Made by a program: the position numbers and the translations under genes. The notes under the pieces were generated by a model. It worked only from the letters and a program-made list of their open reading frames with translations, did not search any database and was not told where the DNA came from. From the IMG/VR virus record IMGVR_UViG_3300032268_000832, positions 186,001 to 250,000 of that record: a stretch of 64,000 nt of DNA. One strand, given 5' to 3'. Positions 8,292-58,599 of this stretch are shown in pieces. The first letter of the stretch is position 1. Each line of letters begins with the position of its first letter.

Positions 8292-8642
8292 GGGGTTGGT
8301 TGGTTTTGATTGGGTATAGTCGTAAACTGTAAGCATGTAGTGCTAGATTGGAAGCACTTTAATCTGTCTATTAAACATTGAATTGACAACGATTTTATCG
8401 TATCTGAAAATTTCCTTGATGAAGCTGTAATGGTTTCTAACGGAGAGTTAGCAGTAGCTTAAAACTGCAAATAGTGGTAATCCACTTGATAGTGATAATT
8501 CACTAAATAATGGTACACCATTCATCTTTATTATTGGATGCCATCGATAATATATTCTGGCGCTAGAAGAAAAATTGTAGCTAAACATGTAGAAAACATT
8601 TGAAGAATACTCAAGACGCGGGTTCGATTCCCGTCAGCTCCT
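8292..8642 (+). ncRNA. ssrA: tmRNA; tag ORF 8385-8462 DNDFIVSENFLDEAVMVSNGELAVA*
   Basis: GGGGTTG/CAGCTCC acceptor with G3-U70, GACGCGGGTTCGATTCCCGT T arm, tag ending AVA-stop. Confidence 0.9.
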
Positions 8643-8787
8643 CGAGTACTTTTTTGGGTGTATTAGGTTAATTCTTATTATACTCAACTCTTTAAAAAGA
8701 TTCAGTTAATTTTACCGAAAACATACTGAAATAAAAACCCCTAGTAAATTGTCGCTTACTAGGGGTTTAACTTTTTAATGCAATACC

Positions 8788-9717: not shown

Positions 9718-10377
9718 ATGGCAAGAAAAGAAAAAAACATACACTACATTTATAAAACAACGTGTAATATAACAGGACGATGGTACATCGGAATGCATAG
9801 CACGTATAACTTAGAAGATGGTTATATAGGTAGTGGTAAAACATTAAGACGTTCTATTAGAAAATACGGTAAAGAAAATCACACAAAAGAGATTCTAGAA
9901 TTTTTAGAAAATAGAGAAGAATTAGCTAAAAGAGAAAAAGAAATTGTTAATAAAGAATTAATTTCAGATTCCAAATGTATGAATTTGGCTCTTGGTGGTG
10001 AAGGTGGTGGTTTTATCAATGAAGAACATATGTTTAAATGTGTTAAAGCTGGTAGAAAAAAAACTGACGAAGTTTTAAAAGAAAAGTTCGGTGGTGATGA
10101 AAACTGGTTAAGTAGATTCAATTCTCATGTTAATAAAATAGCTTGGGAAAATGAAGAATACAGACAGAATAAATTAAAAAATCTAGATTGGACTGGTAAA
10201 AATCATGCTGAAGAATCTAAACGTTTAATCTCTGAAAAAAGAAAAGGTACTGGTATTGGTGAAACAAATAGTCAATACGGTACGTGTTGGATAACCAGAG
10301 ACGGTGCTAACAAAAAGATAAAAAAAGAAAACCTTGAAACTTATCTGAACGAAGGTTGGGTTAAGGGTAGAAAATAA
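9718..10377 (+). mobile_element. GIY-YIG homing endonuclease (Seg-like)
   Basis: YIYKTT...WYIGMH...YIGSG, NUMOD3-like GKNHAEESK; sits between two tRNA-Met genes. Confidence 0.85.
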
Positions 10378-10384
10378 AATACAT

Positions 10385-10472
10385 CGCGGAATGGTGGAAA
10401 TGGTAACATGCTAGGCTCATAACCTAGAGGAGCAGTAACACTGTGTTGTAGGTTCGAATCCTACTTCCGCAA
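10385..10472 (+). tRNA. tRNA-Met(CAT) with C1:A72 mismatch and long variable arm
   Basis: CTAGG-CTCATAA-CCTAG; variable hairpin GCAG-TAACA-CTGT. Confidence 0.8.
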
Positions 10473-10473
10473 C

Positions 10474-10597: not shown

Positions 10598-11275
10598 ATG
10601 GAAAAGATTAAACTTGAAATTCGTGGTGCAGAGGGCGGGACCGATGCAAAGCTATTGGTGTGTGAAATGAAAGACATTTACACCAAAGCAGCAAACATTA
10701 ATAACATCGGATGAATAACCGATGAAGAAAGAGATGGCTATGTTAGCATATGACTAACTGGTAAAAATGTCAAAAAAATCTTCGAAAACGAAATTGGTAA
10801 CCACAGGTGGCAAAGAGTCCCACCAACCGAACGTAAGGGAAGAGTCCACACTAGTTCAATAACAGTAGCACTTATGCAAGAAAACGATTACAAAGAAGTA
10901 GAGATACATCCAAGTGAATATCGTTTAGAAACAACTAGAGGGACTGGTCCAGGTGGGCAGCACCGCAACACTACTGACTCTACAGTAATTGTAACTCATG
11001 AAGCAACAGGTATTAAAGTTGTAAGAAACGGAAGATGCCAACATAAAAATAAAGAAGAAGCTCTTGTCGAATTAAAAAAACGAGTAAACGATTTTTATAG
11101 AAGCGGTCATGATAATGAAGCTAGTGAACAAAGAAAAGACCAAATCGGGAAGGGTGATAGAGGTGATAAACGAAGAACCTACAGAGTTAAAGATGGTGTT
11201 GTAATCGACCATATCACAGAAAAGACTGCAAATATAAAAGACATATACAGAGGTAAAATACAATTACTATCGTAA
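10598..11275 (+). CDS. class I peptide chain release factor (RF1-like PxT and GGQ; no domain 1) with in-frame TGA at 10712 and 10751
   Basis: manual translation [45 protein letters not shown], in frame with track ORF 10874 ([12 protein letters not shown]). Confidence 0.85.
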
Positions 11276-13105: not shown

Positions 13106-13178
13106 GGTTCTATAGTATTAACGTGAATACGCCCGCCTCTAAAACGGAGAAATATCGGTTCGAGTCCGATTAGAACTA
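13106..13178 (+). tRNA. amber suppressor tRNA (anticodon CTA)
   Basis: acceptor GGTTCTA/TAGAACT, loop CTCTAAA, T arm ATCGG-TTCGAGT-CCGAT; anticodon stem only 3 bp. Confidence 0.7.
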
Positions 13179-13238
13179 CAAACACTTTACATTTTTTAGA
13201 AAAATGATATATTTATAAACAAAAAACAAATAGAACAA

Positions 13239-13589
13239 ATGACTTAGATTAACAATCAAAAATTAAGAGTTGTCACAAGACGTGACTTACCAATTTCCAC
13301 ACAAGCGGTGCAATCGGCACACGCAGCCATTGATTTTCAACATGACCACCCAGAAGTGGCATCACAATGGCAAACAAAATCAAATTATTTAGCATTATTA
13401 ACTGTCGCTGATGAAGAAGAGTTAATCAAATTGATTACCAAAGCTATCTTTATTGGTATCAAACACACTATTTTCCGTGAACCAGATTTGGGTAACGTGA
13501 TTACAGCAGTAGCCTTTGAACCAACAGACGCGGCTAAAAAACTTACCAGTTCATGTCCGTTATTAGGAAAGGAGGTTCAATATGCTTAA
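13239..13589 (+). CDS. peptidyl-tRNA hydrolase Pth2-like protein with in-frame TAG at codon 3 (13245)
   Basis: MT*INNQKLRVVTRRDLPISTQAVQSAHAA...FREPDLGNVITAVAF. Confidence 0.75.
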
Positions 13590-13839
13590 TATTCAATCCA
13601 GAACAGAAATCATTTTCCATTTTAACAAAATGTCTTTACAAGACCCTAGTATACCTATGTGGGTAATCAAAGCCAAGGGTGAAACATATTATGTAGACCA
13701 CGTAGATATGGAATCTGGTGTAGGTTTTACTACCAAAGAAACACCAGACAACCCAAGTACAAAGGGTTCTATTAAATTCAAAGCTAAATTGAAAATTGAA
13801 AAAATAAACAATAGGGTAGTCGCAACGATTTACCCTTAA
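13582..13839 (+). CDS. hypothetical protein
   Basis: ORF track. Confidence 0.6.
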   Translation: MLNIQSRTEIIFHFNKMSLQDPSIPMWVIKAKGETYYVDHVDMESGVGFTTKETPDNPSTKGSIKFKAKLKIEKINNRVVATIYP

Positions 13840-13845
13840 TTAAAT

Positions 13846-13915
13846 GGTTTGGTGACCGAGTGGTAGGTACAGTTCCGCAAGAACTGGCACGGTGGTTCGA
13901 ATCCACCCCAAACCT
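13846..13915 (+). tRNA. tRNA-Cys(GCA), atypical C33
   Basis: GGTTTGG/CCAAACC, CAGTT-CCGCAAG-AACTG, U73. Confidence 0.75.
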
Positions 13916-14049
13916 CTAATAATAATTTAAAACATAGAAATCATGATGTAGATTGCAAGACCACCGAATTAAGTTTATTATAACTTGGACATTATCTTGG
14001 ACAACTTGTCCAACTACTAACAATTATAATAAATTTAAAAAGAAAACAA

Positions 14050-24105: not shown

Positions 24106-24189
24106 TGTGATGTGGATGAATGGTTTAGTCACCAGCCTGATACGCTGGGTGTTTATAACACAATGTGGGTTCGAGTCCCACCGTCACAA
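24106..24189 (+). tRNA. tRNA-Ile(GAT) with long variable arm
   Basis: CCAGC-CTGATAC-GCTGG; variable hairpin GTGTT-TAT-AACAC. Confidence 0.8.
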
Positions 24190-24191
24190 CT

Positions 24192-24604: not shown

Positions 24605-24690
24605 TCTGGTTTGGCCGAGTGGACGATGGCAGCAGACTGTTAATCTGCTAGGGTACACCCTCAACGTAGGTTCGAATCCTACAGCCAGAG
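24605..24690 (+). tRNA. tRNA-Asn(GTT) with long variable arm
   Basis: GCAGA-CTGTTAA-TCTGC; variable hairpin AGGGT-AC-ACCCT. Confidence 0.8.
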
Positions 24691-24757
24691 CGAAAATTTT
24701 TTTGTTAATCTATTGACTTTTTGTTCGAATTTATTATATTTATAATAAAAACAAATT

Positions 24758-52138: not shown

Positions 52139-52219
52139 GCCGTGGTTCCTGAGTGGTCAAAGGGGGCGGACTGCAAATCCGCTGCGAAAGCTTCGTGGGT
52201 TCGAATCCCTCTCACGGCT
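52139..52219 (+). tRNA. tRNA-Cys(GCA) with extended variable arm
   Basis: GCGGA-CTGCAAA-TCCGC; variable TGCGAAAGCTTC; U73. Confidence 0.85.
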
Positions 52220-52240
52220 CAATGATAAACTGAAAAAAAA

Positions 52241-52634: not shown

Positions 52635-52723
52635 GGGACTATGGTGTAGTTGGTTAAACATCCCATCCTTACAAGATGGAGACGAGAAGTATAACGCTGG
52701 TTCGAATCCAGCTAGTCCTACCA
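52635..52723 (+). tRNA. tRNA-Val(TAC) with 16-nt variable region
   Basis: CCATC-CTTACAA-GATGG; encoded CCA. Confidence 0.8.
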
Positions 52724-53865: not shown

Positions 53866-53940
53866 GGCCCCGTCTTCTAAACGGAATAGGAAGCCACCCT
53901 TTCAAGGTGTGTAATGCGAGTTCGAGTCTCGTCAGGGCTA
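53866..53940 (+). tRNA. tRNA-Glu(TTC)
   Basis: CACC-CTTTCAA-GGTG. Confidence 0.85.
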
Positions 53941-53977
53941 CAATCTGGTTAAGATTCCAGTAATCAAAAATCTAAAT

Positions 53978-58431: not shown

Positions 58432-58507
58432 ATGAGGATAGCTCAGTTGGTAGAGCGCTCGGTGGTTCGCTGCCGAGAGGTTGCAGGTTCGAGTCCTGCT
58501 CCTTGTA
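58432..58507 (+). ncRNA. tRNA-like RNA with the anticodon loop replaced by a UUCG tetraloop
   Basis: canonical D and T arms; CTCGGTGG-TTCG-CTGCCGAG. Confidence 0.7.
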
Positions 58508-58599
58508 CAAAAAAATTTTTAACTATTATTTAACAAAAAAATTTTGTAGTTACAAAAATACTTAGTATATTTGCATTGTAAAACATAAACAATAACAAA

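Follow-up and report, generated by a model that had tools for sequence, protein, structure and literature searches.

Why phages that use the standard genetic code carry nonsense-suppressor tRNAs is an open question, and the locus described here raises it in a concrete form, since a tRNA with the amber anticodon precedes a gene whose third codon is TAG. The window, by which we mean the whole 64,000-nt stretch of DNA analysed, corresponds to positions 186001-250000 of a 306,463-bp virus record (IMGVR_UViG_3300032268_000832; 31% GC), which has 38 tRNA genes across its full length, and lake-water metagenomes of several independent studies also contain the phage. The original prediction, made from the window alone, held that this TAG is conditionally recoded and that synthesis of the encoded peptidyl-tRNA hydrolase (Pth)-like protein hinges on the suppressor tRNA outcompeting RF1. 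The elements of the locus on which the question turns are the following.

13106..13178, plus strand: amber suppressor tRNA, anticodon CUA (ARAGORN and Rfam), with loop CUCUAAA and discriminator A73, CCA not encoded
13186..13213, plus strand: putative sigma-70-like promoter between the tRNA and the gene, TTTACA - 16 nt - TATATT with TG before the -10 element (consensus scan)
13239..13241, plus strand: proposed true start ATG (all 60 recoded loci have an in-frame ATG 1-6 codons ahead of the TAG)
13245..13247, plus strand: in-frame amber TAG at codon 3, followed by A (ATT) and kept in 60 of 65 distinct loci (sequence)
13239..13589, plus strand: full Pth2-like ORF of 116 codons with the TAG counted, ending in TAA at 13587-13589 (Pfam, AF2, Foldseek)
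13308..13310, plus strand: GTG taken as the start by standard-code gene callers, giving a 93-aa product; probably not the real start

The tRNA itself was recovered by two independent programs. ARAGORN called a tRNA with anticodon CTA at 13106-13179, and the Rfam tRNA model (RF00005) scored 50.2 bits at 13106-13178, against a gathering score of 29, as expected of a cloverleaf. There are two C.A mismatches at the anticodon stem, and the identity elements are ambiguous, the best similarity to any other tRNA of the phage being 72%, to a tRNA-Arg. As had been described, the tRNA ends 60 nt before the ATG, and positions 13239-13250 read ATG ACT TAG ATT. The hexamers in the intervening segment may function as a promoter for the gene, and related loci likewise show a TTGACT/TTTACA ... 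TATATTTAT motif ahead of the gene. A further motif, TATATTTATA, is present at 13205-13216 of the window and at L019:2318-2356 (genome about 94117-94155); it recurs just upstream of genes that have no -35 element, such as a fibre-like gene, and resembles a T4-type late promoter, for which it is a candidate by likeness. No strong RNA structure was detected around the TAG (z = -2).

The reading frame beyond the TAG runs into a Pth2-like N-terminus that a start at GTG 13308 cuts off, a claim of the original prediction that is upheld by PF01981 and by the structural model. We consider a start at this GTG probably wrong because it would cost the protein its first beta-strand and two conserved residues; on the AF2 model and the alignment, the resulting product lacks strand 1 (residues 5-11, KLRVVTR), half of helix 1, R11 and D13. 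At the protein level, conservation of the segment from the TAG to the GTG is strong. In a sister strain from an independent lake metagenome (depth 282), ATG ACT TAG ATT is identical and the GTG is replaced by ACA, and in many homologues this position is a Thr. None of the metatranscriptome contigs extends over the gene. Public collections hold this family in two wrong forms, either 116 aa with Gln at codon 3 or 93, 105 or 106 aa from internal starts. In a protein search, many homologues were 116 aa long and began MTQINNQ, and others were 93 aa long and began at an internal Val or Met. The contigs of the 116-aa homologues nevertheless read ATG ACT TAG, and translating the gene does not reproduce the stored protein. 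The Gln of the database entries thus arises because gene callers read TAG as Gln on short contigs, a translation artefact that had been missed in the original prediction. The possibility that TAG replaced a Gln codon was rejected, since the DNA behind these "Gln" proteins reads TAG, and within the MTQINNQ clade no homologue had a sense codon at the site.

The 113 residues that follow the TAG score 33.1 bits with the Pfam PTH2 family (PF01981), whose cut-off is 23, and 32.5 bits were obtained when the genome was searched. The first match position is 16 codons upstream of GTG 13308; scores against the NCBIfam Pth2 models are far under the equivalog cut-offs. An AF2 model built from 39 family members (pLDDT 96, pTM 0.89) has the Pth2 alpha/beta fold, matching archaeal Pth2 and human Bit1 structures in Foldseek (2zv3, 1q7s, 3erj, 1wn2 and 1xty; E 1e-7 to 1e-6, TM 0.72-0.79). 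The phage family has the fold and the VVR-DL ... AQ--HA motif in common with archaeal and eukaryotic Pth2 (Bit1/PTRH2; PF01981) but differs from them in an invariant set of its own (R11, Q22, H25, W41, E78 and T86). The catalytic residues of characterised Pth2 enzymes are the Lys of the GK motif and an Asp (Sulfolobus enzyme). In profile alignments to PDB Pth2 chains, the GK lysine falls over a variable position and the Asp over the invariant Glu78 of an EPD motif. Since the canonical lysine is not conserved in the family, the biochemical activity is uncertain.

Two scans of IMG/VR identified 80 homologous loci, 65 of them with distinct proteins, at 42-100% identity to the protein of the window. 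The original prediction had named conservation of the TAG in homologues as a check, and among these distinct loci the arrangement of an ATG, 0-5 further sense codons, TAG and a purine was found in 60. After the TAG, the first base is A in 49 loci and G in 11, and the next codon is ATT in 45 and GTA in eight, the others having GTT, ATC, ATA, GGC or ACA; the codon directly before the TAG takes 18 different forms. The TAG is never replaced by TAA or TGA (60/60), and between it and the conserved KL(Y/R)VV core none of the 60 loci has an ATG, GTG or TTG. Lineages that use Shine-Dalgarno (SD) sequences have GGAG or GAGG 5-8 nt upstream of the ATG and not upstream of the codon after the TAG. A conserved in-frame stop with coding sequence downstream and a start upstream, as is characteristic of read-through, is therefore found in 60 of 65 loci, with SD spacing to match. 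A purine after TAG, according to work in E. coli by Bossi and by Miller and Albertini, reportedly favours suppression by tRNA, and the purine in 60 of 60 loci fits this context rule. Terminal branches of the family tree have a median length of 0.21 changes per site, many being much longer; with its base unresolved, the tree does not separate one origin of the TAG from several. Eight of the nine single-base changes of TAG give a sense codon. That TAG has been kept at one site over such branches, despite these escapes and its rarity as a stop, points to selection for the stop itself.

The layout is identical in three huge phages, LR756500 (462 kb), LR756501 (735 kb) and LR745206 (635 kb). Freshwater jumbo phages of 31% GC stand at one end of its range and megaphages of 735 kb at the other, and cluster C mycobacteriophages have it in modified form. 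When the region was compared with the INPHARED phages by blastn, no match was obtained. L021 and L076/L078 have another in-frame TAG within the Pth2-like ORF, at sites that encode His/Glu or Gln/Glu in homologues, and the lineages concerned may be TAG-recoded.

A suppressor tRNA is physically linked to the gene. A tRNA(CUA) lies within 5 kb of the gene in 50 of the 60 recoded loci, and in the clade of the window the distance from its end to the ATG is usually about 60-200 nt. No other anticodon is as common near these genes as CUA (62 of 252 tRNAs). In an RNAalifold analysis of the tRNA(CUA) of 34 relatives, compensatory changes support 17 of the 18 pairs predicted. Five bases of the loop, TCTAA, are invariant, the anticodon among them. 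The 63 distinct tRNA(CUA) sequences fall into types that are only 57-79% identical to each other, one of them with a long variable arm. With backbones so diverse, it is unlikely that one and the same amino acid is inserted everywhere, which argues that the codon acts as a gate and not as a code for a particular residue.

Three complete genomes without a nearby tRNA(CUA) (G001, G002 and G005) were checked whole with ARAGORN. G002 (353 kb) has no CUA tRNA and has a tRNA(UUA), and a tRNA(UUA) is present in G005 (169 kb) as well; ochre suppressors, with anticodon UUA, read UAG in addition to UAA. In G001 (362 kb), a divergent tRNA-like element with a CUCUAAA loop lies 26 nt upstream of the ATG and scores 23.7 bits, below the Rfam threshold of 29. 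A search of five genomes for a suppressor anticodon loop together with a T-loop pattern gave matches at chance level only. At locus L073, which is heavily rearranged and has neither tRNA(CUA) nor ATG-x-TAG, there is a degenerate tRNA homologue with a changed loop. Three further loci start with ATG and lack the TAG, and each has a single tRNA within 5 kb, which is always tRNA(UUA):

L098:6513-6604: tRNA(UUA) near a TAG-less Pth2-like gene
L100:9487-9562: tRNA(UUA) near a TAG-less Pth2-like gene
L103:1355-1430: tRNA(UUA) near a TAG-less Pth2-like gene

In G007 (242 kb, incomplete), which belongs with these TAG-less cases, the tRNA(UUA) is the sole tRNA found in the record, accompanied by a tmRNA. 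The linkage of the gene with suppressors is thus broader than the gate, and the linked tRNA(UUA) at the three TAG-less loci means that linkage alone does not require gating.

Outside this gene, the use of TAG by the phage is conventional. Read with code 11, the genome has compact genes and a coding fraction of 92%, and of the 374 genes called, 324 end in TAA, 28 in TGA and 22 in TAG; the three stops in the window that the original prediction had listed as ordinary gene ends (13055, 29394 and 62522) do close ORFs with TAG. In the 22 TAG-ending genes, the next in-frame stop lies 0-26 codons past the TAG with a single exception, a long open frame at genome positions 92254-95535, which was rejected as recoding because it consists of two adjacent genes. 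A scan of the whole genome for start-proximal TAG yielded the Pth2-like gene only, other start-near TAG or TGA candidates being unconvincing, and G001, G002 and G005, likewise scanned whole, had no other convincing in-frame TAG. Across the four genomes scanned whole, 6-14% of gene-ending stops are TAG and 48-87% are TAA. The 306-kb genome is on the standard code, with one recoded gene and no genome-wide recoding. We regard it as very improbable that the whole genome reassigns TAG (code 15) and that this gene is one of many. The presence of a suppressor tRNA, the rarity of TAG as a stop (22 of 374) and the extra TAGs in the relatives L021 and L076 could be read that way; the coding density and gene compactness under code 11, the nearness of the next stop in TAG-ended genes, the resolution of the one long continuation into two separate genes and the outcome of the start-proximal scan all speak against it. 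Even less credible is that the locus is a pseudogene or a sequencing error, or that the 93-aa product is the real one. Standard-code gene callers do give this product, but the TAG recurs across many independent assemblies and samples, the stretch from the TAG to the GTG shows strong protein-level conservation, the GTG itself lacks conservation, and the truncated form would be without core structure. Conditional recoding of one gene is supported instead, by the conserved TAG with its upstream ATG, the linked suppressor and the standard code elsewhere. The proposal that it is local stands insofar as the standard code holds elsewhere in the genome; what the proposal had missed is that the locus is no isolated oddity and is, to judge from its distribution, an ancient and widespread module.

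Two readings that accept the conserved TAG deserve closer attention, and both are unlikely in our estimate. In one, ATG-ACT-TAG is a tiny upstream ORF, the enzyme is made by re-initiation or by independent initiation at ATT or further downstream, and the tRNA(CUA) is unrelated. This is the main alternative overall, and for cluster C mycobacteriophages it is plausible. In Bxz1 (L157), Myrna (L023) and ScoobyDoobyDoo (L158), the gene for peptidyl tRNA hydrolase reads ATG or GTG, TAG, GTG; the GTG after the TAG is the annotated start and has an SD sequence 7 nt upstream, so that the protein could arise there without read-through, and a tRNA(CUA), annotated as 'tRNA-OTHER' in Bxz1, lies 130-300 nt downstream. 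Among the 60 recoded loci, moreover, 48 have ATT, ATC or ATA, which are weak alternative starts, after the TAG. The remaining 12, however, have GTA, GTT, GGC or ACA there and no other start before the core; re-initiation has no need of TAG in particular, yet TAG is found in 60 of 60 loci of TAA-rich genomes; the SD spacing suits the upstream ATG; the preference for Ile or Val at the next codon looks like conservation at the amino-acid level; and the tight linkage to a suppressor tRNA is left unexplained. The other reading grants that read-through is real and denies the TAG any regulatory role, making it a tolerated, inherited quirk kept by a neutral ratchet. The second in-frame TAG in the genes of L021 and L076 fits this, as does the proposal of Borges et al. 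(bioRxiv 10.1101/2021.08.26.457843) that suppressor acquisition detoxifies in-frame stops. A neutral TAG should nevertheless decay, given that eight of nine single-base changes lead to sense, and neutral TAGs would be expected at random sites in random genes, whereas here a single near-start site of one gene is kept over branches of 0.2-0.6 or more changes per site, with a conserved purine context and a physically linked tRNA, and other in-frame TAGs were not found in the four genomes.

The reading that we prefer, with a probability of roughly 0.78, is that programmed amber read-through gates a Pth2-fold hydrolase and ties its output to the phage suppressor tRNA. Ribosomes would initiate at ATG 13239 and meet UAG at codon 3, where host RF1, releasing a dipeptide, would compete with the phage tRNA(CUA). 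The complete 116-residue enzyme would be reached only by read-through, so that output would follow the activity of a tRNA that the phage alone supplies, and the enzyme could probably be made only when this tRNA works. With the gate inside the first seven codons, the abortive product would be trivial. As no host tRNA would read UAG, the codon would in effect report the function of the phage-supplied tRNA. The charging of the tRNA and the occurrence of read-through would both be expected on this scheme, and the amber codon would presumably scale the dose of the enzyme to suppressor, or more generally phage-tRNA, activity. The dependence of Pth synthesis on the competition with RF1, as originally predicted, is supported by comparison among relatives, in those steps that are testable in silico.

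The neighbourhood suggests what such an enzyme might be for, as it contains further elements that could act on stalled ribosomes and a small module that surrounds the gene.

8292..8645, plus strand: phage tmRNA (Rfam 72.4 bits against a gathering score of 47; absent from the ARAGORN listing of the window)
10874..11275, plus strand: 133-aa GGQ-domain-only protein, RF1-derived (PF00472 83.9 bits; NCBIfam RF1 positions 201-333; GPGGQ)
13582..13839, plus strand: 85-aa ORF overlapping the Pth2 stop (ATGCTTAA), with its own AAGGAGG motif (sequence)
13846..13916, plus strand: tRNA-Cys(GCA), which closes the small module (ARAGORN)

The GGQ protein has no codon-recognition domains, may on this domain content be a codon-independent ribosome-rescue factor, and has its conserved gene some 1-4 kb ahead of Pth2 in 20 related loci. 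The Pth2 module has a tmRNA nearby in L015, G002 and G007 too. The 85-aa ORF follows Pth2 directly in about 30 related loci (tblastn) and gave no lead in Pfam, PHROG or the Atlas, and in many close relatives a tRNA-Cys comes after the module. Because the hydrolase gene belongs to a conserved island that also encodes a tmRNA and a GGQ protein derived from RF1, we infer that the enzyme recycles peptidyl-tRNA or another N-blocked aminoacyl-tRNA. The recycling activity could then scale with read-through and with the ribosome stalling that suppressors cause, a scheme into which the tmRNA and the GGQ protein fit. Another possible substrate, by analogy, is N-acetylated aminoacyl-tRNA, since Pth is able to detoxify this product of GNAT toxins, a subject on which there are published papers (PMC4942678, PMC9241777). 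In the same part of the window, an ORF at 9718-10377 (plus strand), flanked by tRNA-Met genes, has a weak match to group I intron GIY-YIG endonucleases (TIGR01453, E 3e-6, below the cut-off).

Several other tRNAs of the phage are unusual. One with anticodon UCA at 53866-53941 (plus strand), called 'SeC' by ARAGORN and scoring 42.7 bits against the Rfam tRNA model, is a possible opal suppressor, and no convincing in-frame TGA gene for it was found in the genome. At 58432-58508 (plus strand) and at genome positions 286683-286759, ARAGORN reported the four-base anticodons ttcg and gagg, that is, eight-base anticodon loops; the ttcg tRNA reaches 54 bits in Rfam, and the two may be quadruplet decoders or merely mis-folded predictions. 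In addition, tRNAs of the normally short Met, Ile, Asn, Cys and Val classes are 82-89 nt long (10385-10473, 24106-24190, 24605-24691, 52139-52220 and 52635-52723), which suggests insertions, introns or long variable arms.

The proposed gate has parallels in known systems. The prfB gene, encoding RF2, is autoregulated by a +1 frameshift at an early in-frame UGA and thereby senses its own product. The present gene resembles it as an early in-frame stop in the gene of a termination or recycling factor, with synthesis set by competition at that stop, and differs in that the frame is unchanged and a dedicated suppressor tRNA is supplied. The bar minigenes of lambda are stand-alone and toxic to pth mutants. 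As in these minigenes and in early peptidyl-tRNA drop-off (treated in PMC10192219), an ORF of two or three codons that ends in a stop is a type of message from which short peptidyl-tRNAs, which are Pth substrates, arise; here, unlike in the bar minigenes, the mini-frame continues into the hydrolase gene. Xanthomonas phage XacN1 (PMC5852040) is, like the present phage, a jumbo phage that uses the standard code and encodes many tRNAs, tRNA(CUA) among them, and targets of its suppressor tRNAs were searched for with none identifiable. We rejected XacN1 as an already solved case: there the family domain forms the C-terminal portion of a protein of 279 aa that has no TAG, and since this homologue is a TAG-less fusion, the present module does not explain the XacN1 suppressors. 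A parallel at the level of the code is provided by crAss-like phages, Lak phages and the clades of Borges et al. (bioRxiv 10.1101/2021.08.26.457843), in which phage suppressor tRNAs drive the reassignment of TAG to Gln (code 15). There a phage tRNA(CUA) decodes in-frame TAG in a standard-code host, as it would here, and in both cases few genes end in TAG and the genomes are rich in AT. Here, however, recoding concerns a single gene at one conserved position within its first seven codons, linked to the tRNA, and the client is a putative translation-recycling enzyme, whereas theirs are late structural or lysis genes.

Full-text searches of the literature uncovered no account of phage Pth2-like genes with an amber codon or of their module with a tRNA gene, and targeted reading of survey papers on huge phages, stop-codon recoding and jumbo phages brought up none. 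Phage suppressor-tRNA recoding and programmed read-through are the known kinds of system to which the amber-Pth2/tRNA module would belong. It exposes a systematic mis-annotation in public databases, where the protein appears as a 93-aa truncation or with a spurious Gln, and it points to a phage ribosome-rescue island of tmRNA, GGQ protein, Pth2-like enzyme and suppressor whose logic can be tested, the cluster C mycobacteriophages being cultivable and having a related arrangement. For many of the nonsense-suppressor tRNAs carried by standard-code phages, the module supplies a concrete, conserved client gene, one that would constitute a natural translational AND-gate made of a single codon and linked to its own tRNA. 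The arrangement also suggests a possible first step towards a change of the genetic code in phages. More tentatively, and at what we judge to be less than even odds, the pair of suppressor tRNA and amber Pth2 may be an ancient mobile translational sensor of phage-only tRNA activity or of the balance between RF1 and suppressor, and at the same time a selective anchor that retains suppressors in standard-code phages and would thereby pre-adapt their lineages to whole-genome reassignment of TAG.
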